Source of the DNA: Macrostomum lignano
Taxonomy: Eukaryota
Direction of reading: 5' to 3'
Assembly: GCA_002269645.1 (NCBI GenBank)
Contig: NIVC01003282.1
Span: forward strand, 1 to 59,311
DNA: 59,311 bases
Positions 1 to 33,200 of this stretch are shown here, piece after piece (position 1 is the stretch's first letter; the number at the start of each line of letters is the position of its first letter). The notes under the pieces were generated by a model. That model was not told where the DNA came from, made no database searches, and worked only from the letters and a program-made list of their open reading frames with translations. The position numbers and the translations under genes are program-made.

Positions 1-142
1 CGGCAAGCAAAGCTCGGCAAGAAACTTCGGCAGGCAAAATTCCCGCAAGCAAAGTTCGGCAAGCAGACTTCGGCAAGCAAATTTCCGCAAGCAAAAGTCC
101 CGCAAGCAAACTTCGGCAAGCAAACTTCTCGCAAGCAAATTT
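1..142. repeat. GCAAGCAAA(G/A)TTC-type short tandem repeat (mirror of 25367-25508)
   Basis: Degenerate ~10-11 bp units visible directly. Confidence 0.85.
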
Positions 143-1377
143 CATAGACCCGTCTGAAGCCTGGAGCGGTTCCATCCATCTTCCGAATGCTCCCCTCTAC
201 TTGTCATCTGACGCTAACATGGCTATATAAGCTCCAGTAAAGGCGACAGCTGCCGGCTGGACATCCTCAGCTAGACTCTCAAACGTTCCTTCATCACCCG
301 ACGCCGTCGGCTCCTTCAACAAGATTTTTTCATCATCCTTTACATTTTAAAGCTCCTAAAATTATTTTGCGCATTATATTCGGCGTAGACTCATATTACT
401 GTATTTTTACATGCTCTTAAGGTATTGCTACTCGCTGGCTATTACTCGCACTTCTTTATTGGCAAGTTGTTTAGTCTACCTACCTGTTGAAACTCAAGAA
501 ACTCCGCTTGGGTGAAAGCCAGTAACCAACGAAGTCAGCGCTGATGCAAACACATGTAGTCAACATCCTGATGAAATCTGGTGGCTTGGAAGGGCCGCAC
601 TGCTTGACTGGAGACTTGGTTCTGTTTGAGAAGGTGCGCAATCAAAAGTTAGCCGGCGCAACAAAAAATTTCTGGGAATCCCCCCCCGGTAGTTCGACTA
701 TGGTATTCGACTAAAATGGCTTCATTCGTATTCCTACTGTAAATTCCTTATTTTTAACAGTAATCACAATTAACTATGTACTTTGCATGTATTTTAATGC
801 ATGCATACATGTACATTTAGCTACAGTTTTGATCAAATTTCAGGTAATGGGGTATCGCACCATTCGCTCTTTTAGACGACATTTCGATCATGCACTAACT
901 ACGTCGCTTAAATAGTGATGAAAATGCGAGACAAATTTTCCGCGTGTTGCATAGCCAGCAAGCCAGTGCGCAGCTATAAATAAACTTGTGCGAGTACGTT
1001 TGTTTATTTTGATTATTAAAGTTGCCGGAGAGTACTGTTGAGACTTTTAGATTCTAAATGAACGAAAAAATCGCTGTATAAAAGTTTATTAAGCGAATTT
1101 TTTTATATGGACGCGATTTTTCGGAACTTAAAAATGGAAGCGAATAAGCAAACAGTGCTACTTTTTCTGGGTTTTGCTAGAAAATTTAAGGGAGTGCAAA
1201 ATAAAATAATTACTTGTAGGAGGTGCCTTGATGGATTGCTACAGAATATAGTACTACAACTATATACGAGTATCTTAGAGTAAGCGCGAATATACTTCGG
1301 ACTGTCAGGATTACATGAATTAAGTCAGACTCCACTCATAAAAATGAAGTGCAGGTCATTATCGAAATAGCCGGCAC

Positions 1378-2209
1378 TCAATCCACAATCATGCGTCCTT
1401 TGCCGAAGTTCATTCCGGCCTGACTGGCGCCCTTGTTGAAGCCCGCCTGCAGCCCAATAACCGACTTGCTGGCGTTCATCTGTTCCTCGCTGAACTCCCG
1501 TTTGTTCTCCTCTGAAAGCTTTGGCCCCAGCACCGGGCCGGTGAATTCTGGGTGCACCTGGCACTGAAAATTATTACTTCAATGCGTTAGTGAGCCACTC
1601 AGTCCGTTTTCAGACATCTCATAGTTATACCCACTATGGCTTAATTGTGACTCACCGTGCGGCCCAGAGCGAACAGGCACTGGGTAACCTGGCTGATGTC
1701 CTTCTTTTCGTACAGATCCACGGTCTGGAAAACATCAGTCGTGGGGACGCCGTAGGCCTTAATAGCATTCTGGAACGCATTGATGTTCTCCATTATCTTG
1801 AAGGGCATGCTGTTGGCTTCATTAATCTTCTTTACGCTGCCCGGCTTGATCTTGTTCATCAGCTTGCACAGCACGATGCCTGCAATGTCGTGAATGGTTT
1901 TTGATATTAAATAAAACAAATGTTTAATGCACATGTAAATTTCACTTTTCGAATATCTCACCATTCTGCAGGATATTCTCATAGCCCTTATCTCTCTCTA
2001 GCTTCTCGCCAATAATAGCCTCAATCCAGTCGAGCACTTCAGCCTCCTGTCCTGGATCGCGCTTTCCATCAAGCTGCGGAGTGAACACATTCCCTTACAT
2101 AAATTACTTTATGTAAGTCAGTCAACATAATAAAAAATGAAAATCCTGTGTTACAAACCTTTTTTTTGATCTGGGCGCTCAAGCCGTATGCAAGACCCTG
2201 GTTTGACAT
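1378..2209 (-). CDS. Calponin/transgelin-family (myophilin/MP20-like) protein, 4 coding exons, left copy
   Basis: Mirror of 23292-24123. MSNQGLAYGLSAQ N-terminus, CH domain (LCKLMNKIKPGSVKKIN...VFQTVDLYEKKD) and calponin repeat (IGLQAGFNKGASQAGMNFG). Confidence 0.93.
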
Positions 2210-2765
2210 GGCTGGCTTGACTAGACTGATATAGCGCAATTTTCAGGATGGTGAAAGCAGCGAGATCAGGGCCACAGGATCGCTAGGTTTTATTCCTCTC
2301 CCTCATTCCAGCCTTATCCTGGCAAAAGCTTACCTTTTCACTTGCCATACCAACCCTCCCGTCCATCGAGGCCGATCGATAAACTTCATCCCTGCGGGCT
2401 TCGGCTAACCTTTGCAGCAGGAGCGACGTAAACATCACGCCCACGGTTTGCGAGCGGGTTGTGCAGGAGGCCGAACCAGGGTAGGATTTAGCAGAAATGG
2501 TTTCGGGTCTCTGGACGCCAAATCACCCGTGTACTGCAGCTGAAGCCAACTGCACCAGAACGATCAGACTTTGTCATCCTATTTTGGTCTTCCTGATCCA
2601 GTTCTTCCTTTACCCTCTTCCCACAACCTGAAAATCGTTGATCCCTACTTTTCTTTTTCTAAAGCTGCAGCGGAATCGCAGCGGCAAATGAAGAGTTGAA
2701 AGAATGCCCAAGATTTCGGCTGTTCGAATAGAAGACTGTGAGCAAAGGTTTTGGCAGTACAGGCC

Positions 2766-2990
2766 CCACTGGGAAAAACGATGTCGAAACGACGTCGTTT
2801 TGCGATGTCGTTTTGACGTTGTGGTTTGTCCCCGCCCTACTACGTCGTTTCGACATCGTATTTATATCGTTTCGACGTCGTATGTATGTCGTTTCGACAT
2901 AGTATGTACGTCGTTTTTACAACGTATGTATGTCGCAAAATCGTATTGATGTCGTATTCATTTTCATGTAGTTTTCGCGGCTCTCGCGTG
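2766..2990. mobile_element. Probable MITE remnant with degenerate ACGTCGTTT repeats (mirror about 22510-22736)
   Basis: CCCACTGGGAAAAACG start followed by many (A)CGTCGTTT(T/C)G units; partner terminus not identified. Confidence 0.4.
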
Positions 2991-3480
2991 TCGTAAAATG
3001 CAATTTAATCTATCTGCTGTTGGTAATGTCCTGCTACAAATTTTCTAAGCCATAAAAAACTATCATATACAAGTAGAATAGTAGAAAATAGTAGAAAATG
3101 TTTCTTTGCTAGATGGTAATACTATTGGTTCAACTTCACTCGAGCTCCAGTATAAAATGATAGACAAGCGCACAGAATCACACAGATCATACAGACGTAC
3201 TATTCTGTGCCAGTACGCTATAGCTATTTGTAGAAAAACCGTTAAATTCAATTATTGTGCAAGTATTGAAATGAGTAAAGGGTTGTATGTAAGGCAAACC
3301 ATTTTTAGTATATGGACGATATAATCGTGTTTAAATATAATGGCACACAAGGTAACAACAGATGAATTACGAAAAAGTATAATTTGTATGATTTTTTCTT
3401 CTGGCAAAATGAAACATGACCATGGCAAAAAGAGAAAAAGGAGTGAGAAATAGACGAAAAAGAGAGAGACAGAAGAATAG

Positions 3481-3483
<3 letters not shown>

Positions 3484-3521
<38 letters not shown>

Positions 3522-3540
3522 ACGAGAGCGAGAGAGAGAG

Positions 3541-3582
<42 letters not shown>
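3484..3582. repeat. (GA)n microsatellite (mirror 21919-22012)
   Basis: Seen directly. Confidence 0.95.
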
Positions 3583-3587
<5 letters not shown>

Positions 3588-4765
3588 GTTCGTAACCCGT
3601 AAACTAAAAGAAAAAAGAAAACTATAAACTATTTTGGTAACAGTAACAGTGATAACAGTAAACTAACTGCATAAAAAATTGAAACATTGATAACAGGGCT
3701 CAATGAGCTATAGCGAGCATTATAGATGAACTGTGAAAACATTGCACTGCAAAATAAAAAGGAAAACTTCTTCGAAAAAGAAGAAAAAGCAAATTTGATA
3801 ACAGCAAACAGCGAGAACTACATGAGAAAAAGAAGTACTGATTAAATGGCTCAATGAGCTAGCATCTATTCCAAATACTTAAATTAGTATTATAATCTGT
3901 AGGGTCCTTCTGTATGGTTACATCTAACAATAGGGTTAGCCTATAGGCCTATTGGTAATTAACCAAGGTGGTGCAGTGACGTCACGACAGATTAGGAGAA
4001 TCCGCAGCGAGTGACAGGTAAGGATGCTGTGGTTGATGACAGGATTTTAAGTGAGAACAGGAGTAACAGGTGGATCTTGCAACTGGAAAAGATCGCATTG
4101 GAAAGAAATGCGGGCATGGCGACTGCAATGACTGCAGAGGATCCAACATCTGTACTGTGGTGCGAAGAGAACGATAAGGTCAAAGATGATCTTGAGGAGT
4201 GTGGCACCTGGGCATGTCGGCTTCGAGAAGCAATGGACAGAGGCTGGATAGGTTCACTGACAGCTATCATGTAAAGTAGGTCTGAGCCTATGAAGGATTT
4301 TGGACCACCTCCAATGAGGGGAAAATAAGCAGTGCGCAGGTTGTTTTTGTCACTGTTCCACTTCATTCCTCCTCCCCAGTCGCTGATTCACATCTCGCAG
4401 GTACCAGCCAATGCATGCCCCGATGGCTGCGTCTGTCGTTTGGTACTTGGCATCGTGTCTAAAAAGAAGGGTGATATTTAAAAGGGTGTTTCGCTGCTCC
4501 TGCTTGTTTGCTTAGTACGCATAAGCAACCTTATTAAAAAACGATGCAAAATGATGCGTAAAATCTGCGTTACTTATTTAAATTAGAATTCTCAGAAAAG
4601 ATGATGCAAAAAATTATTTACTGATTATTAAGCTCAAAGAGGTGATCATTTATAAATGCATTTATCAGTGTATGCGTTAAATTATTTCACCAACCGCTAA
4701 ATTGATCGTCATCTATGACAACAAAAAAAGACAAAATACGCTGACAATAAAATACGCTGTCAGTG

Positions 4766-6573
<1,808 letters not shown>

Positions 6574-7653
6574 TCTTCAGCTATTAATTAGGCTTTTAAT
6601 ATAAAACTATTAAAAGATAAGTAAAACTGAGGTAGCTGGTCAAAATAAATGTCAGTTCAGGGTAAATACAAGCAGTTTTATAAAACAGAGGGTCAGATAA
6701 ATGTAAAACAGTTCTAATATAAATTTAAATCAGTTCAATATAAAGAGAAGCTATTGGATTAGCAACAGTTAATAAGTAGCAGCAGCGTCCGCAAACCTCA
6801 CACGCACTGCCACGTTAGAGTAAGAAGAAGAGAAAAGAAAAGAGAAGAGAAGAGACCCGACGAAATTTTGAAATAAATTAAATAATTAATGGAGAAAATT
6901 TTTTTTAGATAAAAGAGAGAGAAAGACCGAAAAACCTGAATTAAACTATTTATCCAAAAATAGGCAAAAAGCAAATAACTTCTAAATTAAAGAAAATAAG
7001 TTAAAAATAATTTAATTAATTTTGGAGGAAATTATCAAACTTAAAGGTAATTTAAACTACTTATATTAAAAAATAGTGTAAAAGCGTATAGCAGGAAAAA
7101 TTTGCAAATACGCCTAAAAATTAATTAATTTAGAAAAAAAATTGGGCAGGGTTTCCCCAGGCCGAAGCCAATTAAATCAGCGAGGAAATCAAATAAATAG
7201 ATAATAGCCTAGCTAACTAACAGGACAGCGCGTCCTAGACCCGACCCTTAAGAAGGAAGCCCTAAAAGCTTAAGACCCGAAAATAAATAAAATTGAGAGC
7301 AAAAAGAAAGGGGGGAGTCTCAGGCCAGGGCAGGTGAGACAGGGACAGTGAAGTAACTAAAGAAAATAGACCCTAAGACATTCTAAAGGCCAAGAAAAAG
7401 AGAAGAAAAAAAACTTTAATCGAAATGAAAAATGAAGATGGAATTCACAATTAACTTACTGGCAGTAGTTTTGAAGACTTTTCGAGCAGATATCAGACCG
7501 GCCGGGACGTTGGCAGTGCGCGCAAGGCTTGGGGGGAGGGAGGACGGAAAATTCATTCCAGACGGTCCGAGCTCGATATATTTTGTTTAAAAAAGTTATG
7601 ACCATTTTCTCTTGCTTTTTAGTTATTTTTTCGACTTTGGCTATTGTCAGTAG

Positions 7654-7965
7654 TATATGGGTGGCCCAATAGATTTAAGCTTTTTTTCGAGTCGGATTTG
7701 ATTGGAAATCAATCTAGAAACAATCTCCTACACGAATGAGTTGGTAGTGTGGGAAAAGTTGACAAAATAAATAGGGGCCCGGGAGATACACTATACAGAG
7801 TTTAGGGAGACTAATACACTTTAGGGTTACCGATATATGGGTGGCCTGAGGGACTTGAGCACAGTTTATTGAGTCGAATTGGATTGGAAATCAATCTAGA
7901 AATGATTTCCCACACGACTGAGTTGGTAGTGTGGGAAAAGTTGACGAAATACATAGGGGAGATAT
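7654..7965. repeat. Imperfect direct repeat, period 180 bp (mirror about 17536-17847)
   Basis: TATATGGGTGGCC at 7654 and 7834; shared GATTGGAAATCAATCTAGAAA and GAGTTGGTAGTGTGGGAAAAGTTGAC blocks. Confidence 0.85.
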
Positions 7966-9034
7966 TAGGGTAGAGTGAGTGATAGAGATAGAGGTATAGG
8001 CAGAATGAATTCCAAATGTTAGTGAAATGTTGCTATAAATTCCATGTGAAATGGCAAACTCAGACTTGGTTCAGTCCTCAGTTATGGCATGTAGAAATTG
8101 CGCAAAAGCGATCCCCACAAGTTGCAGAATTTCTTCTGCCGATAGTAGTAATTAACGTTGTCGAATACTTAGCCTAACAGCGGTGGGTGGGTAGTGGCAG
8201 TTGCTGTGATCGCTTGTTACTGTTAGGCTGTTAGGCTGTAGTTTCATTCCTAATTGCACGACGTGCCTTGTCTAATCTTTTACAGATTCCTCAATGGCCC
8301 ACCACATTGACCAATCACGAGTGAGGTGTGATTTTAACATGAAATATAATCTTCATTCGCGCGTTCCTTTATTGATTTAATACTCGCTAACCATAGCCAG
8401 AACATATTTTCGCAGAAAAATGACACGAGCAAATAATGCAGAGGCATTTTGCCCCATTGTGCCGTGCAACTGGCCCAAGAAGCTCCGCGCCGACTCATTG
8501 AAGCGCCACTTGCACAGCAAGTATAATATTAATGGCCAACCCATTTCGATAGCCGTGCAATATGCGAGACACGCCGAAAAAATAGACAGTGATGTTTTTA
8601 AGTGCGGGCTGTGTTATAAAGTAACACTAAGCTTCCAAGGCTTAAGAGATCACTACCGTTCAGCGCATTATCATGCAAACTTTGAAAGTCTTGCTGAATC
8701 GCAAAAGGCTGCCACAGCCTTTTACGAAAAAGTCCGAGAGTATTTTCGTGGTGGCGCTATCGACATGCGTCTACAAACGGAAATTCTGCGCTTGGTAAGA
8801 CAATTACCTTTACCTTTACCTTTACCTTTACCTTTACCTTCTACTAAAACACTATGCTATCTAAAGTATCAAATATTTTGCATTTTGCCCAAAAAATGTA
8901 GGCTTAGGTGTGAAAACGGTATTGTAGGCATACATTTGCATTTACATTGAAATAAATTAATATTGTTTGAAGCAATCAACAGTACACCAAATTTAAATCC
9001 CGGAAACCTTTAACCAGGCCACTGGTGCTGTCGA

Positions 9035-9575
9035 TGATGCTGGTGCTGCCGCTGATGCTGGTGCTGGTGCTGGTGCCGGTGGTGCCGCTGATGCTGGTGC
9101 TGGTGCTGGTGCCGGTGGTGCCGCTGATGCTGGTGCTGGTGCCGGTGGTGCCGCTGGTGCTGGTGCTGGTGCCGGTGGTGCCGCTGATGCTGGTGCTGGT
9201 GCCGGTGGTGCCAGTGGTGCTGGTGCTGGTGCCGGTGGTGCCGCTGATGCTGGTGCTGGTGCCGGTGGTGCCGCTGGTGCTGGTGCTGGTGCCGGTGGTG
9301 CCGCTGATGCTGGTGCTGGTGCCGGTGGTGCCGCTGATGCTGGTGCTGGTGCCGGTGGTGCCGCTGGTGCTGGTGCTGGTGCCGGTGGTGCCGCTGATGC
9401 TGGTGCTGGTGCCGGTGGTGCCAGTGGTGCTGGTGCTGGTGCCGGTGGTGCCGCTGATGCTGGTGCTGGTGCCGGTGGTGCCGCTGGTGCTGGTGCTGGT
9501 GCCGGTGGTGCCGCTGATGCTGGTGCTGGTGCCGGTGGTGCCGCTGATGCTGCCGCAGATTCTGCCGCTGATGCT
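9035..9575. repeat. Coding minisatellite (GCTGGT-based 24/30-bp units; mirror about 16085-16480)
   Basis: Units such as GCCGCTGATGCTGGTGCTGGTGCCGGTGGT; 144 bp longer in the left arm. Confidence 0.9.
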
Positions 9576-10014
9576 GCCTCTCATGAAGCGGCCTCGGCCA
9601 ATAATGCGACTTTGGATGTCTGCCTCCGTTTTTCTGGTGTTGTAAGCAATTTTTTTCTCGTTTATGGTCAACAATGATTTTTTAATTTCTTATACAAGCT
9701 ATATTAACGTGCGTTAGAGATATAGCTTGTTGGCTAAGGATGTCAATTCCCGGAAAATTCACACCCCAGGGGAACTGAGGATTTTTCGGCAAAAACCCCG
9801 GTTCCCCGATCTCTGGGTCTCCGATCCCTGGGTTCCTCGGTCTCTGGGTCCCCGGTCGTCTGTAACTGTGGATACAGTCAGTAATAGTACCATGTGTAGC
9901 ATGTAGGCAAACTCCGGCCCACATGTTAAATGCGGCCCGCGAAGCCTCTCTATCCGTCCTTTGAAGCTTCTTCACAATAGCAATCCGGCCCTGCTCAAAG
10001 TTAGTGCTTCCCAG

Positions 10015-10382
10015 TTCTTTCATCTCCTGTCTCATATCTCCCCTCGTCTCCTCATTTAATGTCTTCTCATCTCATTTTCTCTCATCTATCTCATCTCCTC
10101 TCCTCTCATCTCCTCTCCTCTCATCTCCTCTCATCTCATCTCTTCTTCCCTCTCTCCACTCTCCCCTCCCCTCCTCTCCTCTCTCCTCTCATCTCCTGTC
10201 CTCCCTTCCCTCTTTTAATCTCATCTCCCATCTCTCCTCTTATCTCCTCCCCTCTCAACTCCTTTCCTCTCTCTCTTCTCCTCTCTCACTCCTCTCTTAT
10301 CTTCTCACTCATCTCTTCTTCTATTATCACATCTCTAATATCGCCTCTCACCTCCCCTCTCTTCTGCCTGTGTCTGTCTGTC

Positions 10383-10435
<53 letters not shown>
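10015..10435. repeat. CT-rich low-complexity tract ending in (CTGT)n (mirror about 15210-15635)
   Basis: Seen directly; probably intronic in the SET gene. Confidence 0.85.
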
Positions 10436-10659
10436 GGCATCCGGAGGCGGAAATAATATCACTAATAATAGCCAGTGACGATACGGCTGTTTTCATTGCT
10501 GATGCCGGACATAAGGGGAAGGGGGCGTTCGCCTCCCGATATCTACGACGGAATGAGTTCGTCTGCGAGTATGCTGGCGAGCTTATAGAGTCAAGAAAGG
10601 TCATTAACCAGCGTGTCGAGCACTACCAACAACATGGCCTCGACACCTGGTACATTTTT

Positions 10660-11214
10660 CGGTCGGTACACCAGGTCCGACACCCTGGTTATAGACTAAT
10701 TATACTTGTTATCTATTGAAAATGTTATCTATTAAAGCTGGAACTAATAAACTAAACAAAAGCAAAAAAATAAAGCAAAAAGGAAGCAAAAAACTCACAT
10801 GTTGCTGGCTCGCTGCCCGCTCAATGAATCGATGCCACTTCGAAGGATGCGGTGGCAAAGGGCGATCCTGCTGAAGGGCCTGTCGCGCTGCAGGCACGAC
10901 ACTGCCTGCGCATAGTCACGGACAAGCCGTATATGTGCTGGACCCTTCATGGGCTGGCCGTTGTGCTGCACTACGTCTTCGTGGTGGTGTCGGTAGTGGT
11001 CGCGCATCTGCTTGCTGGCTTCTCGGCAATCAGCAATGCAGCACATGCCGGCATTTTCGACCCGCACTTTTTGCTCAAAGATGGCGAACCATCGCAGTTC
11101 ATGAATACGATGTAGGAACGCTTTGTGCAATAAGCCGCAATGGCGCTTGAGATTGTCAAGCCTCATTCTCTGGCCGCAGAGCGCACATTCTTTACTTTTT
11201 TCATTAGATGTCAT
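10660..11214 (-). pseudogene. Paired C2H2 zinc-finger paralogue, frameshifted and cut at the breakpoint
   Basis: CALCGQRMRLDNLKRHCGLLH...CCIADCREASKQMRDHYRHHH. A shifted frame continues RPLPPHPSKWH, matching RPLSPHPATWH of the 30245 gene. Donor GTGAGT at 10798; candidate acceptor TAACCAG at 10685. Confidence 0.7.
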
Positions 11215-11621
11215 GCCTATCGGCTAATACAATTAAAAGCCAAAGGATCGATTTGGTAGCTTTATTATATAGCAGTTGAAACTGGACATCCACATGCCAT
11301 TGGTCGCTTATCCAATTGACGGAGCTTTGACCCTATACATACATATTTGGCTGTCTACAATTGGCTAGAAAGTGGGGTGGGGTCAGTGGGGTGGGGTCAT
11401 AGTTGGAGTCTCTTTCGCACGTTGCACCCAAAGAAAAGTGTTGTGAAAATAAGAGAGTAGTAGCATGAGATAAAATTATAGAGTGAGTTGCTTAGGAAAC
11501 AGAAGGGGGACAACGGGATCGAGTATGGTTGAGAAAAAGGTCAGTAAAGCCAGAGAGGTAGGGATAGATGAAAATATGAGACTCAACTCAGATAGATGAA
11601 AATTCTATCTCAGATTAATAT

Positions 11622-12678
<1,057 letters not shown>

Positions 12679-13002: not shown

Positions 13003-13366
13003 TTTTTTATTAGAAGCAGGGGGTTGTGTGCACCCTGGCGCACTTTAAGCGACATAGGCACACAACCGGCGAGAGGCATTACTGTCCATTCCGCCGACTC
13101 CCCTGAGCAGGCATACAAGCGCGCGGATACGTACGCAGGCACACACTCACACAGGAGTGTACAGCGGCCCTAACTTTATATTATCGTTAGGCATGTACAC
13201 TTCACTGCGCCTTGGGGGGTTGGCTCTCAAGGCCGTTAATTGCACGAGCAGAGCCAAGCCGAGATTCCAATTCAGCCCCAAATTAATGTGACTGCACTTG
13301 GAATCGAGCCTGGGTCGCTGGCACACCAGAGCAGCTGCGCTACCGCTGGGCTACGGCCCCCCCCCC
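13003..13366 (-). mobile_element. tRNA-derived SINE, copy 1
   Basis: A box TAGCCCAGCGG, B-box-like GGCTCGATTCC, A-rich tail, 13-bp TSD ACTGCAAGTAGTA (12990-13002 and 13367-13379); close homologue at 51802-52160. Confidence 0.88.
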
Positions 13367-14067: not shown

Positions 14068-14690
14068 AGGGGCGTAGCCAGGAATTTTGATTGGGGGGCC
14101 GTGAGTTAGGGGCGCCAGTTTCTTATAGATGGGGGGCGCCAGTTTCTTATAGATGGGGGGCGCCAGTTTCTTTTAGGGGGCACCAGTTTCTTTATAGGGG
14201 GGGGGCAGTTTCTTTATGGGGGGCGCCAGTTTCTTTATAGGGGGGGGGGCAGCTTATAGGGTTAGGGCGCCAGTTTCTTTTAAGTGGCACCAGTTTCTTT
14301 ATAGGGGGGGACAGTTTCTTTATGGGGGGCGCCAGTTTCTTTATAGGGGGACAGTTTCTTTATGGGGGGGGGCGCCAGTTTCTTTATAGGGGGACAGTTT
14401 CTTTATGGATGGGGGGACAGTTTCTTTATGGGGGGCGCCAGTTTCTTTATAGGGGGACAGTTTCTTTATGGGGGGGCGCCAGTATCTTTATAGGGGGCAG
14501 TTTCTTTATGGGGGGGCGCCAGTTTCTTTATAGGGGGCAGTTTCTTTATGGGGGCGCCAGTTTCTTTATAGGGGGGGGGGCAGCTTATAGGGTTAGGGCG
14601 CCAGTTTCTTTATGGGGGCGCCAGGAAAGCGGCAGCGTTTCCAAAGGGGCGGCAAAGCGCAGTTCTGGGGGGGGGGCGCCAAGCGCTGTG
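14068..14690 (+). repeat. G-rich degenerate minisatellite (GGGGCGCCAGTTTCTTTAT units) in a probable hAT-like MITE
   Basis: Begins CAGGGGCGTAGCCAGG; ~21-24 bp units with interspersed GGGTTAGGG; TSD and second terminus not found. Confidence 0.6.
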
Positions 14691-14729: not shown

Positions 14730-15211
14730 TTAACAGTCAATAAGCCATGTGCATGCTTCAATTGTCTCTCGGTCATTTGGGCCGTAATCAAACAGCAGTT
14801 CCTCGCCCTTTTCGACCGCACGATTCGTAATGAAATAAAGTGCGAAGCGGCACGTTTTGCCGGCCACAGGCACTGAAATAGTTCTGGCTACACAGTTCGG
14901 ACTTCTCCTTGAGTGATTCAGGAAGCGGCCGAGTCGCTCGGTGTACTGCGCGTCAATCGCGTAGCTTTTTGAGTGATGAACAAACTCAAAAATGTACCAG
15001 GTGTCGAGGCCATGTTGTTGGTAGTGCTCGACACGCTGGTTAATGACCTTTCTTGACTCTATAAGCTCGCCAGCATACTCGCAGACGAACTCATTCCGTC
15101 GTAGATATCGGGAGGCGAACGCCCCCTTCCCCTTATGTCCGGCATCAGCAATGAAAACAGCCGTATCGTCACTGGCTATTATTAGTGATATTATTTCCGC
15201 CTCCGGATGCC

Positions 15212-15272
<61 letters not shown>

Positions 15273-17081
15273 GACAGACAGACACAGGCAGAAGAGAGGG
15301 GAGGTGAGAGGCGATATTAGAGATGTGATAATAGAAGAAGAGATGAGTGAGAAGATAAGAGAGGAGTGAGAGAGGAGAAGAGAGAGAGGAAAGGAGTTGA
15401 GAGGGGAGGAGATAAGAGGAGAGATGGGAGATGAGATTAAAAGAGGGAAGGGAGGACAGGAGATGAGAGGAGAGAGGAGAGGAGGGGAGGGGAGAGTGGA
15501 GAGAGGGAAGAAGAGATGAGATGAGAGGAGATGAGAGGAGAGGAGATGAGAGGAGATGAGATGAGATAGATGAGAGAAAATGAGATGAGAAGACATTAAA
15601 TGAGGAGACGAGGGGAGATATGAGACAGGAGATGAAAGAACTGGGAAGCACTAACTTTGAGCAGGGCCGGATTGCTATTGTGAAGAAGCTTCAAAGGACG
15701 GATAGAGAGGCTTCGCGGGCCGCATTTAACATGTGGGCCGGAGTTTGCCTACATGCTACACATGGTACTATTACTGACTGTATCCACAGTTACAGACGAC
15801 CGGGGACCCCAGAGACCGAGGAACCCAGGGATCGGAGACCCAGAGATCGGGGAACCGGGGTTTTTGCCGAAAAATCCTCAGTTCCCCTGGGGTGTGAATT
15901 TTCCGGGGAATTGACATCCTTAGCCAACAAGCTATATCTCTAACGCACGTTAATATAGCTTGTATAAGAAATTAAAAAATCATTGTTGACCATAAACGAG
16001 AAAAAAATTGCTTACAACACCAGAAAAACGGAGGCAGACATCCAAAGTCGCATTATTGGCCGAGGCCGCTTCATGAGAGGCAGCATCAGCGGCAGAATCT
16101 GCGGCAGCATCAGCGGCACCACCGGCACCAGCACCAGCATCAGCGGCACCACCGGCACCAGCACCAGCACCAGCGGCACCACCGGCACCAGCACCAGCAC
16201 CAGCGGCACCACCGGCACCAGCACCAGCATCAGCGGCACCACCGGCACCAGCACCAGCACCACTGGCACCACCGGCACCAGCACCAGCATCAGCGGCACC
16301 ACCGGCACCAGCACCAGCACCAGCGGCACCACCGGCACCAGCACCAGCATCAGCGGCATCACCGGCACCAGCACCAGCACCAGCATCAGCGGCACCACCG
16401 GCACCAGCACCAGCACCAGCATCAGCGGCACCACCGGCACCAGCACCAGCACCAGCATCAGCGGCAGCACCAGCATCATCGACAGCACCAGTGGCCTGGT
16501 TAAAGGTTTCCGGGATTTAAATTTGGTGTACTGTTGATTGCTTCAAACAATATTAATTTATTTCAATGTAAATGCAAATGTATGCCTACAATACCGTTTT
16601 CACACCTAAGCCTACATTTTTTGGGCAAAATGCAAAATATTTGATACTTTAGATAGCATAGTGTTTTAGTAGAAGGTAAAGGTAAAGGTAAAGGTAATTG
16701 TCTTACCAAGCGCAGAATTTCCGTTTGTAGACGCATGTCGATAGCGCCACCACGAAAATACTCTCGGACTTTTTCGTAAAAGGCTGTGGCAGCCTTTTGC
16801 GATTCAGCAAGACTTTCAAAGTTTGCATGATAATGCGCTGAACGGTAGTGATCTCTTAAGCCTTGGAAGCTTAGTGTTACTTTATAACACAGCCCGCACT
16901 TAAAAACATCACTGTCTATTTTTTCGGCGTGTCTCGCATATTGCACGGCTATCGAAATGGGTTGGCCATTAATATTATACTTGCTGTGCAAGTGGCGCTT
17001 CAATGAGTCGGCGCGGAGCTTCTTGGGCCAGTTGCACGGCACAATGGGGCAAAATGCCTCTGCATTATTTGCTCGTGTCAT
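14730..17081 (-). CDS. Paired C2H2 zinc finger + Gly/Ala/Asp linker + SET8/KMT5A(PR-Set7)-like lysine methyltransferase
   Basis: Exon 1 17081-16707 and exon 2 16495-16016 are both phase 0. SET exon: GHKGKGAFASRYLRRNEFVCEYAGELIE...WYIFEFVHHSKSYAIDA...LGRFLNHSRR...GEELLFDYG...TWL*. The SET domain call is strong; the splice path from exon 2 to the SET exon is tentative. Confidence 0.72.
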
Positions 17082-18927
17082 TTTTCTGCGAAAATATGTT
17101 CTGGCTATGGTTAGCGAGTATTAAATCAATAAAGGAACGCGCGAATGAAGATTATATTTCATGTTAAAATCACACCTCACTCGTGATTGGTCAATGTGGT
17201 GGGCCATTGAGGAATCTGTAAAAGATTAGACAAGGCACGTCGTGCAATTAGGAATGAAACTACAGCCTAACAGCCTAACAGTAACAAGCGATCACAGCAA
17301 CTGCCACTACCCACCCACCGCTGTTAGGCTAAGTATTCGACAACGTTAATTACTACTATCGGCAGAAGAAATTCTGCAACTTGTGGGGATCGCTTTTGCG
17401 CAATTTCTACATGCCATAACTGAGGACTGAACCAAGTCTGAGTTTGCCATTTCACATGGAATTTATAGCAACATTTCACTAACATTTGGAATTCATTCTG
17501 CCTATACCTCTATCTCTATCACTCACTCTACCCTAATATCTCCCCTATGTATTTCGTCAACTTTTCCCACACTACCAACTCAGTCGTGTGGGAAATCATT
17601 TCTAGATTGATTTCCAATCCAATTCGACTCAATAAACTGTGCTCAAGTCCCTCAGGCCACCCATATATCGGTAACCCTAAAGTGTATTAGTCTCCCTAAA
17701 CTCTGTATAGTGTATCTCCCGGGCCCCTATTTATTTTGTCAACTTTTCCCACACTACCAACTCATTCGTGTAGGAGATTGTTTCTAGATTGATTTCCAAT
17801 CAAATCCGACTCGAAAAAAAGCTTAAATCTATTGGGCCACCCATATACTACTGACAATAGCCAAAGTCGAAAAAATAACTAAAAAGCAAGAGAAAATGGT
17901 CATAACTTTTTAAACAAAATATATCGAGCTCGGACCGTCTGGAATGAATTTTCCGTCCTCCCTCCCCCCAAGCCTTGCGCGCACTGCCAACGTCCCGGCC
18001 GGTCTGATATCTGCTCGAAAAGTCTTCAAAACTACTGCCAGTAAGTTAATTGTGAATTCCATCTTCATTTTTCATTTCGATTAAAGTTTTTTTTCTTCTC
18101 TTTTTCTTGGCCTTTAGAATGTCTTAGGGTCTATTTTCTTTAGTTACTTCACTGTCCCTGTCTCACCTGCCCTGGCCTGAGACTCCCCCCCTTTCTTTTT
18201 GCTCTCAATTTTATTTATTTTCGGGTCTTAAGCTTTTAGGGCTTCCTTCTTAAGGGTCGGGTCTAGGACGCGCTGTCCTGTTAGTTAGCTAGGCTATTAT
18301 CTATTTATTTGATTTCCTCGCTGATTTAATTGGCTTCGGCCTGGGGAAACCCTGCCCAATTTTTTTTCTAAATTAATTAATTTTTAGGCGTATTTGCAAA
18401 TTTTTCCTGCTATACGCTTTTACACTATTTTTTAATATAAGTAGTTTAAATTACCTTTAAGTTTGATAATTTCCTCCAAAATTAATTAAATTATTTTTAA
18501 CTTATTTTCTTTAATTTAGAAGTTATTTGCTTTTTGCCTATTTTTGGATAAATAGTTTAATTCAGGTTTTTCGGTCTTTCTCTCTCTTTTATCTAAAAAA
18601 AATTTTCTCCATTAATTATTTAATTTATTTCAAAATTTCGTCGGGTCTCTTCTCTTCTCTTTTCTTTTCTCTTCTTCTTACTCTAACGTGGCAGTGCGTG
18701 TGAGGTTTGCGGACGCTGCTGCTACTTATTAACTGTTGCTAATCCAATAGCTTCTCTTTATATTGAACTGATTTAAATTTATATTAGAACTGTTTTACAT
18801 TTATCTGACCCTCTGTTTTATAAAACTGCTTGTATTTACCCTGAACTGACATTTATTTTGACCAGCTACCTCAGTTTTACTTATCTTTTAATAGTTTTAT
18901 ATTAAAAGCCTAATTAATAGCTGAAGA

Positions 18928-20737
<1,810 letters not shown>

Positions 20738-21919
20738 CACTGACAGCGTATTTTATTGTCAGCGTATTTTGTCTTTTTTTGTTGTCATAGATGACGATCA
20801 ATTTAGCGGTTGGTGAAATAATTTAACGCATACACTGATAAATGCATTTATAAATGATCACCTCTTTGAGCTTAATAATCAGTAAATAATTTTTGCATCA
20901 TCTTTTCTGAGAATTCTAATTTAAATAAGTAACGCAGATTTTACGCATCATTTTGCATCGTTTTTTAATAAGGTTGCTTATGCGTACTAAGCAAACAAGC
21001 AGGAGCAGCGAAACACCCTTTTAAATATCACCCTTCTTTTTAGACACGATGCCAAGTACCAAACGACAGACGCAGCCATCGGGGCATGCATTGGCTGGTA
21101 CCTGCGAGATGTGAATCAGCGACTGGGGAGGAGGAATGAAGTGGAACAGTGACAAAAACAACCTGCGCACTGCTTATTTTCCCCTCATTGGAGGTGGTCC
21201 AAAATCCTTCATAGGCTCAGACCTACTTTACATGATAGCTGTCAGTGAACCTATCCAGCCTCTGTCCATTGCTTCTCGAAGCCGACATGCCCAGGTGCCA
21301 CACTCCTCAAGATCATCTTTGACCTTATCGTTCTCTTCGCACCACAGTACAGATGTTGGATCCTCTGCAGTCATTGCAGTCGCCATGCCCGCATTTCTTT
21401 CCAATGCGATCTTTTCCAGTTGCAAGATCCACCTGTTACTCCTGTTCTCACTTAAAATCCTGTCATCAACCACAGCATCCTTACCTGTCACTCGCTGCGG
21501 ATTCTCCTAATCTGTCGTGACGTCACTGCACCACCTTGGTTAATTACCAATAGGCCTATAGGCTAACCCTATTGTTAGATGTAACCATACAGAAGGACCC
21601 TACAGATTATAATACTAATTTAAGTATTTGGAATAGATGCTAGCTCATTGAGCCATTTAATCAGTACTTCTTTTTCTCATGTAGTTCTCGCTGTTTGCTG
21701 TTATCAAATTTGCTTTTTCTTCTTTTTCGAAGAAGTTTTCCTTTTTATTTTGCAGTGCAATGTTTTCACAGTTCATCTATAATGCTCGCTATAGCTCATT
21801 GAGCCCTGTTATCAATGTTTCAATTTTTTATGCAGTTAGTTTACTGTTATCACTGTTACTGTTACCAAAATAGTTTATAGTTTTCTTTTTTCTTTTAGTT
21901 TACGGGTTACGAACTTTTC

Positions 21920-22015
<96 letters not shown>

Positions 22016-23291
22016 CTATTCTTCTGTCTCTCTCTTTTTCGTCTATTTCTCACTCCTTTTTCTCTTTTTGCCATGGTCATGTTTCATTTTGCCAGAAGAA
22101 AAAATCATACAAATTATACTTTTTCGTAATTCATCTGTTGTTACCTTGTGTGCCATTATATTTAAACACGATTATATCGTCCATATACTAAAAATGGTTT
22201 GCCTTACATACAACCCTTTACTCATTTCAATACTTGCACAATAATTGAATTTAACGGTTTTTCTACAAATAGCTATAGCGTACTGGCACAGAATAGTACG
22301 TCTGTATGATCTGTGTGATTCTGTGCGCTTGTCTATCATTTTATACTGGAGCTCGAGTGAAGTTGAACCAATAGTACATTACCATCTAGCAAAGAAACAT
22401 TTTCTACTATTTTCTACTATTCTACTTGTATATGATAGTTTTTTATGGCTTAGAAAATTTGTAGCAGGACATTACCAACAGCAGATAGATTAAATTGCAT
22501 TTTACGACACGCGAGAGCCGCGAAAACTACATGAAAATGAATACGACATCAATACGATTTTGCGACATACATACGTTGTAAAAACGACGTACATACTATG
22601 TCGAAACGACATACATACGACGTCGAAACGATATAAATACGATGTCGAAACGACGTAGTAGGGCGGGGACAAACCACAACGTCAAAACGACATCGCAAAA
22701 CGACGTCGTTTCGACATCGTTTTTCCCAGTGGGGCCTGTACTGCCAAAACCTTTGCTCACAGTCTTCTATTCGAACAGCCGAAATGTCTTGGGCATTCTT
22801 TCAACTCTTCATTTGCCGCTGCGATTCCGCTGCAGCTTTAGAAAAAGAAAAGTAGGGATCAACGATTTTCAGGTTGTGGGAAGAGGGTAAAGGAAGAACT
22901 GGATCAGGAAGACCAAAATAGGATGACAAAGTCTGATCGTTCTGGTGCAGTTGGCTTCAGCTGCAGTACACGGGTGATTTGGCGTCCAGAGACCCGAAAC
23001 CATTTCTGCTAAATCCTACCCTGGTTCGGCCTCCTGCACAACCCGCTCGCAAACCGTGGGCGGTGATGTTTACGTCGCTCCTGCTGCAAAGGTTAGCCGA
23101 AGCCCGCAGGGATGAAGTTTATCGATCGGCCTCGATGGACGGGAGGGTTGGTATGGCAAGTGAAAAGGTAAGCTTTTGCCAGGATAAGGCTGGAATGAGG
23201 GAGAGGAATAAAACCTAGCGATCCTGTGGCCCTGATCTCGCTGCTTTCACCATCCTGAAAATTGCGCTATATCAGTCTAGTCAAGCCAGCC

Positions 23292-24123
23292 ATGTCAAAC
23301 CAGGGTCTTGCATACGGCTTGAGCGCCCAGATCAAAAAAAAGGTTTGTAACACAGGATTTTCATTTTTTATTATGTTGACTGACTTACATAAAGTAATTT
23401 ATGTAAGGGAATGTGTTCACTCCGCAGCTTGATGGAAAGCGCGATCCAGGACAGGAGGCTGAAGTGCTCGACTGGATTGAGGCTATTATTGGCGAGAAGC
23501 TAGAGAGAGATAAGGGCTATGAGAATATCCTGCAGAATGGTGAGATATTCGAAAAGTGAAATTTACATGTGCATTAAACATTTGTTTTATTTAATATCAA
23601 AAACCATTCACGACATTGCAGGCATCGTGCTGTGCAAGCTGATGAACAAGATCAAGCCGGGCAGCGTAAAGAAGATTAATGAAGCCAACAGCATGCCCTT
23701 CAAGATAATGGAGAACATCAATGCGTTCCAGAATGCTATTAAGGCCTACGGCGTCCCCACGACTGATGTTTTCCAGACCGTGGATCTGTACGAAAAGAAG
23801 GACATCAGCCAGGTTACCCAGTGCCTGTTCGCTCTGGGCCGCACGGTGAGTCACAATTAAGCCATAGTGGGTATAACTATGAGATGTCTGAAAACGGACT
23901 GAGTGGCTCACTAACGCATTGAAGTAATAATTTTCAGTGCCAGGTGCACCCAGAATTCACCGGCCCGGTGCTGGGGCCAAAGCTTTCAGAGGAGAACAAA
24001 CGGGAGTTCAGCGAGGAACAGATGAACGCCAGCAAGTCGGTTATTGGGCTGCAGGCGGGCTTCAACAAGGGCGCCAGTCAGGCCGGAATGAACTTCGGCA
24101 AAGGACGCATGATTGTGGATTGA
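23292..24123 (+). CDS. Calponin/transgelin-family (myophilin/MP20-like) protein, about 190 aa, right copy
   Basis: Exons 23292-23342, 23428-23539, 23622-23845 and 23938-24123 have GT-AG introns with compatible phases and give an uninterrupted CH domain plus calponin repeat. Confidence 0.94.
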
Positions 24124-25366
24124 GTGCCGGCTATTTCGATAATGACCTGCACTTCATTTTTATGAGTGGAGTCTGACTTAATTCATGTAATCCTGACAGT
24201 CCGAAGTATATTCGCGCTTACTCTAAGATACTCGTATATAGTTGTAGTACTATATTCTGTAGCAATCCATCAAGGCACCTCCTACAAGTAATTATTTTAT
24301 TTTGCACTCCCTTAAATTTTCTAGCAAAACCCAGAAAAAGTAGCACTGTTTGCTTATTCGCTTCCATTTTTAAGTTCCGAAAAATCGCGTCCATATAAAA
24401 AAATTCGCTTAATAAACTTTTATACAGCGATTTTTTCGTTCATTTAGAATCTAAAAGTCTCAACAGTACTCTCCGGCAACTTTAATAATCAAAATAAACA
24501 AACGTACTCGCACAAGTTTATTTATAGCTGCGCACTGGCTTGCTGGCTATGCAACACGCGGAAAATTTGTCTCGCATTTTCATCACTATTTAAGCGACGT
24601 AGTTAGTGCATGATCGAAATGTCGTCTAAAAGAGCGAATGGTGCGATACCCCATTACCTGAAATTTGATCAAAACTGTAGCTAAATGTACATGTATGCAT
24701 GCATTAAAATACATGCAAAGTACATAGTTAATTGTGATTACTGTTAAAAATAAGGAATTTACAGTAGGAATACGAATGAAGCCATTTTAGTCGAATACCA
24801 TAGTCGAACTACCGGGGGGGGGATTCCCCAGAAAATTTTTTGTTGCGCCGGGCTAACTTTTTGTTGCGCACCTTCTCAAACAAGAACCAAGTCTCCAGTC
24901 AAGCAGTGCGGCCCTTCCAAGCCACCAGATTTCATCAGGATGTTGACTACATGTGTTTGCATCAGCGCTGACTTCGTTGGTTACTGGCTTTCACCCAAGC
25001 GGAGTTTCTTGAGTTTCAACAGGTAGGTAGACTAAACAACTTGCCAATAAAGAAGTGCGAGTAATAGCCAGCGAGTAGCAATACCTTAAGAGCATGTAAA
25101 AATACAGTAATATGAGTCTACGCCGAATATAATGCGCAAAATAATTTTAGGAGCTTTAAAATGTAAAGGATGATGAAAAATCTTGTTGAAGGAGCCGACG
25201 GCGTCGGGGTGATGAAGGAACGTTTGAGAGTCTAGCTGAGGATGTCCAGCCGGCAGCTGTCGCCCTTTACTGGAGCTTATATAGCCATGGTTAGCGTCAG
25301 ATGACAAGTAGAGGGGAGCATTCGGGAAGATGGATGGAACCGCTCCAGGCTTCAGACGGGTCTATG

Positions 25367-26476
25367 AAATTTGCTTGCGAGAAGTTTGCTTGCCGAAGTT
25401 TGCTTGCGGGACTTTTGCTTGCGGAAATTTGCTTGCCGAAGTCTGCTTGCCGAACTTTGCTTGCGGAATTTTGCCTGCCGAAGTTTGCTTGCCGAGCTTT
25501 GCTTGCCGAACTTTGCTTGCCGAACTTCGCTTGCCGAATTTTGCTTGCAGGAAATTTGCTTGCTGCACATAAGCTTGCCGAAGTTTGCTTGCAGGAAATT
25601 TGCTTGCCGAACTTTGCTTGCAGGAAATTTTCTTGCGAGGTTTGCCAGCCAAAGTTTTGCGGGACCTTAAAGAAACCTATTTTTGAGCTCTTGTATTTCT
25701 AATTTTCATTTTCTAAGATTCGTGGAAGTCGCCTATAGTGTTATGATTTTGTATGAGGATATGGCGGATTATTAACTGCATTTTATATACTAAAATATTA
25801 TTAGTATATGCATTATTATACATTAGCATCACTGCAATTATCATACCTGCTCAATCGTGCTGAACTCAGGAACTACAAAGATTTATACTGTTACCGATCC
25901 CTATCTACCTATACTAAATCTCTAAGCATTCTATATACTACATTCTTAGAATGAAACTCTATAAGCCTAGTTTGAAAGCTTCGTGTCAAGTCAGTTTACG
26001 TCGAACCTGATAAGAATCCACTTGCAAAGCATCTGTAGTAAGTAATAATTGACTGACCAACTTTACAAGCAATCAAAACAAGCAAGCAAACAAGAAAATA
26101 ATTGTGCAAGTTAAAACCTTGCGATTGTGTGATTGCAAATTTCTAGAAAGCAGACATCAAAATTTCGCAAGCAAAGTTCGGCAAGCAAAGTTCCTGCAAG
26201 CAAATTTCCTGCAAGCAAAGTTCGGCAAGCAAAGTTCGGCAAGCAAACTTCAGCAAGCAAAATTCCGCAAGCAAAGTTCGGCAAGCAAAGTTCGGCAGGC
26301 AAAATTCCGCAAGCAAAGTTCGGCAAGAAAAAATTCCGTTCGGCAAGCAAAATTCCTGCAAGCAAACTTCGGCAAGCTTATGTGCAGCAAGCAAGCAAGC
26401 AAAATTCGGCAAGCGAAGTTCGGCAAGCAAAATTCCTGCAAGCAAAGTTCGGCAAGCAAACTTTCCGCAAGCAAAC
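25367..26476. mobile_element. Foldback-like element: inverted arrays of GCAAGCAAA repeats around an AT-rich core
   Basis: TTTGCTTGC array about 25367-25662 and GCAAGCAAA array about 26160-26476. Confidence 0.6.
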
Positions 26477-29820: not shown

Positions 29821-30244
29821 AAACATAGATTTCTTGTTTCTAAGAAAGTAAAATAAAAAAATAATTGTAAGCAGCGCCTCTTTTTCTACTGCCAAGCCTG
29901 TAGTGACCTGGAGTCACGAACGAAAGAATGAATGAACTAAGGGTTTGCATTAACTATGGGTTATAATGCTACTTAGGGCTACTTAGCTTTATTCGCTTCT
30001 AGTCCGGCACTTAAGTAACGGCCATAGACAGAAATTTGCTACTCAGCTATAAGAGACCGCTGTTATGTGTGTGGTTTTAAATAGAGCTGATAGGAATTCC
30101 GCTGCATTGACAGGCGCTACAGGCGCTACTAAAATGTTTATGGCCCTTCCTACGTTTTTTGAGTGTCATAGAATAGAAGAGTGCCGTAGAATGACTGCGA
30201 AATAATTTGTGCGAAAGCTTTTACCCTCAACAAACAGCGTGATA

Positions 30245-33200
30245 ATGCCATCAATCAATGTAAACTGCGTCATCTGCGATGCGGAAATGCGTAAAGACAA
30301 CTTGGCACGCCATGCTAGAAGTCAACACCCAGATCATCGCGTCGAGGATATTTTATGGTTTGCGACCTTCGAGCGATTTGTTACTGCTGGTCACGGCATG
30401 TGCTGTGTGTGTAGAGAGGCGTGCGTGCAGCTCCGCTCGCACTACAGAAGCCACCACCCGGAGCTCAATGAGCATAAGGGAAAGCCCATAAAGGGCAGGG
30501 AGCACCAATTGCAGGCACGTGAGTACGCACAAGCCTATCTAGCTGTGGCCCGCACAGAGATTATTCATGGCCGACCACTGTCACCGCATCCTGCAACGTG
30601 GCACCAAGCCGAGCAGCAGCAGCAGCAGCAGCAGCAGCAGGCGCTACAACCGGTCGAGCGCGAGCAGCAGCAGCAGCAGGCGCTACAACCGGTCGAGCGC
30701 GAGCAGCAGCAGCAGCAGGCCGTACCGCCTGCAGCGTCCGTTTCACACCATGGCATGGCGCAGACAACCAATCTGTTCAAACCAGTGCATCCGGACGAGA
30801 AATCACCAGCACGCCACCGCCAGCCCAGTCCACTATCCCAAAAACCAACAAAAAAATTACAGGACGGGGAGGTACTATGGTGCTCGTCCGCGATGACGTC
30901 CAGTACGACAGACTCAAAGTCGATAGAGAACACGACCTCCTGGACGTTGCCACCTGCCGCATCCGCCTCAAAGGACAGCAGCCGATCGTGATAGCATCTA
31001 TCTATGCACCACCATCCAGCTGCCAACGTCCCGATAACACCTGGCAACCCAGCTTCACCAATCTCCCGACTACCGGTAGAGTCATCCTCGGAGGCGACTA
31101 CAACGCACACGGAAGCTGGGACCGCCACATTGATGAAGATCTCAGAGGCCAGACCGTCGACGAGTGGGTCGCCCGCAATGGGCTCGTCATCTGCAATACC
31201 ACCTGCCACACACGCACCTGCCCCAGTACTGGCCGCCTCAGTAGCCCAGACGTGACCATCTGTAGTAGCACCATTGCCGGATCCATCACGGACTCCTGGA
31301 AGACGCTACCAGACTGGGGAAGCGATCACCTGCCGATCGCTTTCGGCCTCCCAGCCTCTAACACCGGAAAGACCCGTCACTGCGGGCAAAAACGCTGGAT
31401 CTATAAGAAGGCAGACTGGGGAGCCTTCAGGGAGTCGCTAAATACCTGGGCAGAATCCGAACGCAACGACACCACCTTAAACACAGAGGCCACACGCCTT
31501 GCCGAAGCCATCCTGAACGCAGCAAGACTTGCCATCACGCGCAGCTCCGGGAAAGAGACGAGACGCCTGCCGTTCTGGAACGACGCCTGCGAAGAGGCCT
31601 CCAAAGCTACACGTTCCGCGAGACAATCCGCAGAAAAAGAACCGACACCAGAAAATATTATTGCCGCAAACAGAGCCCGCCACAACGCCTCAGGCTGTCT
31701 CCGGAGGGAGAAAAAAGCCTTCCTGTTCGATAAAGCGGCAAATTTCAGCCAGGACTCGCGGACATTTTTGGCTTACTCCGCGCACTGAGAGGCGATGGTT
31801 TTAAAACTCCGGACCCGGCTGCCATCGTCAGGGCCGCCTCCCCAGACTCGCCGGAGCGCACCGCCCGCACTAACAAAGAGAAGGCCGAACTCTTTTGCCA
31901 ACTCTACGCCGAAGTTAGCCGAGTCCCCAGACGGAAAAATGACTCGGCCATCAGATACGAAGCGAACGAGGCCACCACGCCTATGGGTGACCCCCAAACA
32001 GACGGCCCGGACGCCCCTTTCGAGATCGACGAGCTCCGCGCCGCTATCCGATGTCTCAAATCAGGGAAGGCTGTGGGAACCGACGGTGTCTCCAACGAGA
32101 TGCTTAAACGCCTCCCGCCGGCCGCTGACAAAGCCTTACTCAGCCTCATCAACCGCACCTGGCGGGAGGGCAAAACACCGACCAGCTGGCGAATTGGCAC
32201 CATTATACCGATCCAGAAAAAAGGGAAAGACGCCGCATCACCGGATAACTACCGCCCCGTCGCACTTACCAGCTGCATCGCCAAGTGCGCGGAGCGCATG
32301 GTTCTGGCTCGTCTTAATTATGACCTGGAGAGCCGTGGCGGCCTCACGCCCACTCAAGCTGGTTTTCGTCGCGGTCGTAGCACCGAGGAACAGCTCGCGC
32401 GAGTCTGCCAAGCCATTTTTGACGGCCTCGAGAGTCTACCGGCGCTACGCAGCATCCTCTGCCTCCTCGACTTCTGCCGAGCGTATGACAGAGTATGGCG
32501 CCTGGCCCTGTATGCCAAAATGCACCGCATGGGCATCCCCAAGCGCATCATCCGCTGGATCCGCGGCTTCCTGTCGGACCGTCACAACGCAGTCCGCTGG
32601 GTTAACGCCACGAGCCGGAACAGAGTCTTCCGCGAAGGTCTGCCACAGGGCAGTGTGCTAGCGCCCACGCTGTGGAATATCTATGTCAACGATTTAGCCC
32701 AAGCAGTCGCCGAGGCGAACCCTTTGGTTAGCCTCAGTCTCTACGCCGATGACTCGGCCTTACTGGCGACCGCTCGCACACTCGACATCTGTGCCAGAGA
32801 ACTCCAACCAGCCCTGGATGCAGTGGCCGACTGGTGCCGAGATTGGAAAGTCTCCATTAGCACTGGGAAATGCTGCTACTCCACCTTCACTCTAGCGGCA
32901 AATGAAAACAACGGCAAACGGAGAGTGAACCTCCAGATCAACGGCGACAAGCTTGCCTTCGATCCAACACCGACCTTCCTGGGACTCACTCTTGACGACA
33001 GCCTAAGTTTCAGCCACCATGCATCAAAGATCCGTAAAAAGATGGCCGCCCGCAGAAGACCTCTCACTGCCCTCGCTACCAGATCGGCCGGTGCGGACAG
33101 TCAGATCCTCCGCATGGCTTACATCGCCACCGTTCGCTCTGTTGCCGACTACGCGTGCGGGGTCTGGGGGTCTTTCACTGCAGCCAGCTCTAAGCTGCTG

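Follow-up and report, generated by a model that had tools for sequence, protein, structure and literature searches.

A predicted SET8/KMT5A-like gene of Macrostomum lignano that combines a two-finger module with phenylalanine at the Phe/Tyr switch of its SET domain

Introduction

The closest described relative of the gene presented here, a predicted SET8-like gene on the minus strand of Macrostomum lignano contig NIVC01003282.1 (assembly GCA_002269645.1), is the human H4K20 monomethyltransferase SET8, also known as KMT5A, SETD8 or PR-Set7. The whole contig of 59,311 nucleotides was analyzed and is referred to as the window. In human SET8, Arg188 and Arg192, located just N-terminal to the first SET helix, bind the nucleosome's acidic patch, and their mutation abolishes nucleosomal H4K20 methylation (PMC7893823). 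His347 hydrogen-bonds the H4 backbone (PMC3741215). Structures of the Y334F mutant at the Phe/Tyr switch (PDB 3F9W, 3F9X, and 3F9Y) include a dimethyl-lysine complex, and the mutant, which can add a second methyl group, has been crystallized with both mono- and dimethyl-lysine products. This mutant is an engineered point mutant of the canonical enzyme, studied on an H4 peptide.

Two other described proteins invite comparison. PRDM9 unites a lysine methyltransferase domain with C2H2 fingers in one polypeptide, consisting of a PR-type SET domain, KRAB, SSXRD and, at the C-terminus, a long DNA-reading array of tandem fingers, whereas SETMAR is a fusion of a SUV39-type SET domain with a mariner transposase. 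A first-pass annotation of the window had likened the gene to PRDM9 and put it forward as a candidate for an undescribed system. Our literature searches returned no account of a finger-SET8 fusion. The gene is better described as a rare lineage-specific variant within the SET8/KMT5A family than as an undescribed system. On balance we favor a real and intact gene for a lineage-specific SET8/KMT5A paralogue that carries fingers, an acidic repeat and a Phe-switch SET domain, and that presumably acts as a lysine methyltransferase.

Results

The gene structure, like the fold and motif content described below, was determined computationally. The predicted gene has three exons with an intact open reading frame (ORF), GT-AG introns and phase-0 junctions, and the spliced exons sum to 1326 nt. 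In the 441-aa product, a two-finger module is followed by a Gly/Ala/Asp repeat linker and then by a C-terminal SET domain.

16707..17081, minus strand: exon 1, ATG start and two-finger module (125 codons; ATG at 17081; donor GTAAGA after 16707)
16496..16706, minus strand: intron 1 (211 nt, GT..AG, 31% GC)
16016..16495, minus strand: exon 2, Gly/Ala/Asp repeat linker (160 codons; acceptor CCAG followed by G; donor GTAAGC)
15201..16015, minus strand: intron 2 (815 nt, GT..AG; CT-rich tract and (CTGT)n before the acceptor)
14730..15200, minus strand: exon 3, complete SET8-like SET domain (156 codons and TAA at 14732-14730)

The linker DNA of exon 2 has a 30-nt period (11.3 copies, 92% matches). 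Exon 3 also encodes an N-flanking helix and a C-flank closing in W-L, and its acceptor is the first AG past a CT-rich tract of ~400 nt that ends in (CTGT)n. A phase-compatible chain of finger, linker and SET exons had been proposed in the first-pass annotation, and our model agrees with it at the coordinates given there.

To collect relatives of the SET domain, 1.84 billion cluster representatives were searched exhaustively with HMMER, which gave 4178 at E 0.001 or better. The architecture of the best single-domain match, P0004, is the strongest evidence at hand for a single-gene exon chain. A single unbroken ORF codes for this protein of 349 aa, whose SET domain shares 46% identity with that of the window protein; it lies on a 1683-bp contig (run SRR19430222) that is unrelated to the window contig. 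P0004 has, in the same order, the same two-finger module, a linker of low complexity and a SET8-like domain that ends ELLFDYG...WL. Exon 1 is collinear with its N-terminus, its linker lies at the same place as exon 2, and the alignment of the two proteins is gap-free over the first (ILxxLA...TG) and the second exon junction (EI[IV]S). Because this closest relative holds the finger-linker-SET order in a single ORF, the fingers and the SET domain very likely form one protein encoded by one gene, as had been claimed from the window sequence. P0004 differs from the window protein in being intronless, in a canonical finger 1 (C-x2-C-x12-H-x5-H), in a basic TRRAAPAARKR stretch before the SET helix, in a linker of Ser/Thr/Ala instead of Gly/Ala/Asp, and in a Phe at the His347 position. 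Its contig looks genomic, with a tRNA-like sequence of the short interspersed nuclear element (SINE) type upstream (L001 1-330). In a neighbor-joining analysis of 152 SET8-like domains the two proteins form a pair in 91 of 100 bootstraps, and the deeper nodes of this tree were all unsupported.

The SET exon matches the Pfam SET family well above the cut-off (E 2.8e-18, 66.7 bits; cut-off 22.4), and its best sequence matches in the PDB are human KMT5A/SETD8 chains (phmmer, E 2.5e-19), with KMT2 as the next family (E 5e-12). Its AlphaFold model, built with an alignment of 53 relatives, has a predicted local distance difference test score (pLDDT) of 94, and the 19 best PDB fold matches found with Foldseek are all SET8, at a template modeling score of about 0.83, with the Y334F structure 3F9Y at the top. 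The domain is 36-40% identical to KMT5A and shares with it the position at the extreme C-terminus, the N-flanking helix and the W-L C-flank. Judged by sequence and by predicted fold, the protein belongs to the broad KMT5A/SET8-like SET family. Three catalytic landmarks were located on the window:

15075..15077, minus strand: Tyr codon equivalent to human SET8 Tyr245 (CEYAG; KMT5A alignment; nearly invariant column Y42)
14910..14918, minus strand: NHS motif (N95 and H96 invariant, S97 nearly invariant in the 53 relatives)
14790..14792, minus strand: Phe codon TTT at the Phe/Tyr switch, ELLFDYG (KMT5A alignment)

The second Tyr of the xDYG motif, Y139 (equivalent to Tyr336), is present in a column that is invariant or nearly so among the 53 relatives. 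In the C-terminus (EACTWLIDC, then the stop), W152 is invariant and L153 nearly invariant in the same set; a W-L near the stop is also typical, as most of the top 150 matches end likewise. The catalytic Tyr, NHS and xDYG motifs are common to KMT5A and the window protein, and with the conserved catalytic and cofactor motifs all kept, the SET domain looks catalytically complete. The SET8-like domain with CEYAG, NHS, GEELLFDYG and terminal W-L noted in the first-pass annotation is present as described.

The window protein differs from KMT5A/SET8 in its N-terminal finger module, its acidic repeat, and the Phe in place of Tyr334. It has the same residue at the switch as the Y334F mutant, but in a natural protein. 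Among the 150 best representatives the switch residue is Tyr in 103 and Phe in 22, and two multi-domain proteins also have Phe (about 127 scorable), so that about every sixth of the nearest SET8-like representatives carries Phe. In relatives of at least 250 aa, the PIP-degron/RR motif is found in 45 of 115, and those that are scorable at the switch comprise 40 with Tyr and 2 with Phe; conversely, 13 of the 15 F-type relatives of this length are without the motif, like the window protein. Because of these 22 and 2 Phe types, and the absence of the motif from 13 of 15, the Phe is not special in the family and marks a recurrent class of non-canonical SET8-like paralogues. The Phe reported at the Tyr334 equivalent is therefore there, but is less exceptional than had been suggested.

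Two features of canonical SET8 were looked for N-terminal to the first SET helix of the window protein and were not found: the RR[ST]xR anchor, which is present in 83 of 123 relatives, and the PIP-box degron (xTDFFPxRR) beside it. The 60 residues ahead of the KGKG motif contain 1 basic and 9 acidic residues. An additional exon within intron 2 coding for the arginine anchor was ruled out, as the alignment with P0004 runs through that junction. Tyr at the switch, an arginine anchor and a PIP-box degron would mark a canonical KMT5A orthologue; the window protein has none of these, and a separate canonical KMT5A is probably also present in the genome.

The N-terminal module contains two fingers only, about 30 residues apart:

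16986..17051, minus strand: finger 1, residues 11-32, non-canonical (C-x4-C-x13-H-x-H, read from sequence)
16833..16898, minus strand: finger 2, residues 62-83, classical pattern (C-x2-C-x12-H-x4-H, read from sequence)

Over four related modules C11, R23, D25, L27, R29, H30, C62, C65, R76, H78, and H83 are invariant. The Pfam zinc-finger matches (Zn_SUZ12, zf-C2H2_2, and zf-C2H2_4) all fall under the gathering cut-off, including those of finger 2 to Zn_SUZ12 (E 1.4e-4) and zf-C2H2_4 (E 0.041). Finger 1 weakly and non-significantly resembles finger 1 of Zif268 (PDB profile search, E 0.03), and a profile of the whole module gave just non-significant C2H2 matches and one spurious enzyme match in the PDB. 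We consider the earlier label of two C2H2-like fingers a fair one, with putative DNA binding. The analogy with PRDM9, on the other hand, does not carry far: the window protein has two dispersed N-terminal fingers, one of them non-canonical, instead of a tandem C2H2 array, and its best Pfam and PDB matches are SET and SET8 rather than the PR domain.

Fingers have been joined to SET8-like domains elsewhere. In P0020 (JGI name SETD8) and P0030 (13 cluster members), C2H2 fingers likewise stand at the N-terminus of a protein whose C-terminus is SET8-like and whose switch residue is Phe. Each has two fingers side by side, which are not related to the window module (hhalign probability about 1%), and a coiled coil takes the place of the acidic repeat of the window protein; P0020 keeps an RRSER motif. 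Because of these unrelated fingers, P0020 and P0030 look independent, suggesting that finger-SET8-like fusions arose more than once. In P0043 an Ulp1 protease domain is joined to a SET8-like domain, and P0002 and P0003 have several SET8-like domains each. With the SET exon, word-indexed protein searches returned a single distant match, and with the four-sequence finger alignment a single generic C2H2 protein; a metagenome scan gave nothing nearer than 40% identity and no further copy of the finger module.

The gene lies in a large inverted duplication; its arms, 10.6 kb long or more, flank a unique center of 4.3 kb:

1..10659, no strand: left arm (partner 14988-25508; self-BLAST 99.3% identity over 9.4 kb)
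14988..25508, no strand: right arm, holding the full-length gene minus its last 258 nt
8420..10659, plus strand: second, partial gene copy (exon 1 8420-8794, exon 2 9018-9641, exon 3 fragment 10447-10659)

The last 258 nt of the gene (14730-14987) are within the unique center. In the left copy, homology ends midway through the SET exon, after WYIF. The exon 1 and exon 3 sequences of this copy are identical to those of the full-length gene, and exon 2 is 48 codons longer, with the repeat in frame in both (160 and 208 codons in the right and left copies, respectively). Short indels and repeat lengths account for almost all differences between the arms; in another 8.3 kb, these are 22 short indels, mostly in short homopolymers, and about 3 isolated substitutions. 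The palindrome could represent either a very young duplication or an assembly fold-back.

Two other ORFs in the window encode a related two-finger module:

10795..11214, minus strand: free-standing ORF with the module (139 aa)
30209..30991, plus strand: ORF with the module, just upstream of a 5'-truncated long interspersed nuclear element (LINE) (260 aa)

These ORFs are 43% identical to each other (E 2e-23) and their module has motifs (RxDxLxRH ... RxHYRxxH) and a spacing similar to those of the SET-gene module. In a profile comparison the SET-gene module matches them with a probability of 47% (E 2e-4) over 68 columns across both fingers, against about 1% for control C2H2 N-termini. The GC content at third codon positions is 0.55-0.63 for the module ORFs, 0.64-0.70 for the LINE, and 0.47 for exon 1. 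The module was not found in 120 relatives of the neighboring LINE or in two full genomic loci.

The description of the window as transposon-rich proved correct, with a LINE (APE, reverse transcriptase (RT) and RNase H), a piggyBac transposase and Polinton-like remnants. The LINE (30745-34448, plus strand) is GC-rich (58-60% against about 42% around it), 5'-truncated and frameshifted, and contains the C-terminal half of the APE domain, RT, and RNase H; its nearest relatives, about 42% identical, are from barnacle, acoel and marine metagenome contigs. A separate RNase H fragment is located at 19825-20532 (minus strand). An intact piggyBac-type transposase ORF of 436 aa lies at 45162-46472 (plus strand; DDE_Tnp_1_7, E 1e-53). 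Remnants similar to Polinton/Maverick elements or adintoviruses, all short and degraded-looking, are present at 39120-39692 (minus strand), 49624-50070 (plus strand), and 52422-52934 (plus strand), and are, in this order, a weak capsid-like ORF of the double-jelly-roll type, a basic ORF that matches adenovirus protein X/mu (E 3e-7, over the cut-off), and part of a family B DNA polymerase of the protein-primed kind.

Large tandem arrays occur at 14109-14624, 25366-26479, 26785-27758, 11621-12016, and 35018-35404, together with (TATC)n-type microsatellites. The array just downstream of the SET gene stop has a 21/40-nt unit, and that at 26.8-27.8 kb has a unit of roughly 22 nt and is open in several frames. 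A dispersed repeat of 360 bp with a tRNA-like segment, probably a SINE, is present in two inverted copies (13003-13361 and 51802-52159, 96.7% identical); the SINE-like sequence on the P0004 contig has no detectable similarity to it, and tRNA and Rfam searches gave no matches. The duplicated arm also contains two host-like exons on the plus strand, one with a calponin-homology domain (23519-23860; E 6e-17) and one with the C-terminal motif of a 2-oxoglutarate-Fe(II)/AlkB-like oxygenase (19656-19750; weak, E 0.06).

Discussion

Several observations weigh against a functional finger-tethered SET8 paralogue. Finger 1 has a Tyr where the three related modules carry the second His, and the AlphaFold model of the finger exon (pLDDT 46) is too poor for use. 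The equivalent of His347 is a Cys (CTWL instead of the usual HPWL), and P0004 is the one relative that combines a module of the window type with a SET8-like domain, as the word-indexed protein searches and the metagenome scan gave no other copy. The near-perfect palindrome around the gene may in part be an assembly artefact. This last point could be taken further, to a young duplicate, or an assembly product, that is dead or was never expressed, in which the ORF is intact only through recency and the palindrome is a fold-back misassembly. The error-like differences between the arms, the start of the left arm at the first base of the window and the break of the left copy inside the SET exon fit such an explanation. 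Nevertheless, the 3' end of the full-length right copy continues into unique sequence, and the 4.3-kb spacer between the arms is unlike a simple fold-back read. Moreover, the 46%-identical P0004 keeps the architecture and all catalytic residues, which argues for long-term selection on the family, and we regard the dead-copy explanation as unlikely. A misjoin, in which the finger exon (alone or together with the repeat exon) and the SET exon come from different genes, appears quite improbable to us. The hexanucleotide-based repeat that makes up exon 2 could be non-coding, and intron 2 is low-complexity DNA, but P0004 has all three parts in a single ORF and aligns across both junctions, the splice sites are consensus ones with every junction in phase 0, and the SET exon is without an upstream in-frame ATG in a sensible context, its mechanical ORF extending only across the CT-rich tract.

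A further explanation is that the gene is transposon-related, with a module derived from or shared with mobile-element proteins, and that it directs methylation to repeats or is itself cargo. The two module ORFs inside the window, the position of one of them directly upstream of the LINE and on the same strand as its APE, RT, and RNase H, the profile match that control C2H2 N-termini do not reach, and the base composition of these ORFs, nearer to the LINE than to exon 1, are in line with this. However, the similarity is modest, the 120 LINE relatives and two full loci are without the module, and the LINE copy is 5'-truncated, so that the adjacency may be coincidence. No terminal repeats or other transposon hallmarks were found around the SET gene, and P0004 is located in ordinary-looking genomic DNA. 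We therefore give this explanation a low probability, and treat a mobile-element origin of the fingers as possible. Like SETMAR, the window protein joins a SET-domain enzyme to a module of possible mobile-element origin, although for the window fingers this origin is only a lead. A stronger version, a self-contained writer of higher H4K20 methylation that is directed to repeats by a module shared with retrotransposon-adjacent ORFs, is very unlikely in our opinion. Such a writer would aim heterochromatin at mobile elements without separate KRAB-ZFP/SETDB1-like partners, and tethering by the fingers would make up for the lost acidic-patch anchor.

For the lineage-specific paralogue that we favor, we infer activity, product state, substrate and a tethering role from the features above. 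The SET8-type domain would carry out S-adenosylmethionine-dependent lysine methylation. By analogy with SET8 Y334F, the Phe at the switch probably allows the addition of more than one methyl group, taking the enzyme beyond monomethylation. The finger module most likely tethers the enzyme to nucleic acid or a partner protein, and the acidic Gly/Ala/Asp repeat would act as a long flexible tether. Because canonical SET8's arginine anchor and PIP-degron motif are absent, recruitment and regulation probably differ from those of the canonical enzyme, and nucleosomal H4K20 is not assured as a substrate. Activity as an H4K20 writer on nucleosomes is made less certain by the missing equivalents of Arg188 and Arg192, and from the sequence neither canonical nucleosome engagement nor cell-cycle degradation is expected. 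H4K20 is a plausible candidate substrate, with a non-histone lysine equally open.

Non-canonical SET8-like paralogues with varied N-termini, such as fingers, an Ulp1 protease or multi-SET arrays, appear to be common and are uncharacterized, and the window gene is one member of this under-studied set. If expressed and active, it would provide a natural SET8-type enzyme with a Phe switch, in which a zinc-finger tether stands in place of the acidic-patch anchor and the cell-cycle degron. It would then show lineage-specific rewiring of H4K20 or other lysine methylation, and offer a natural test of the Phe/Tyr switch rule.

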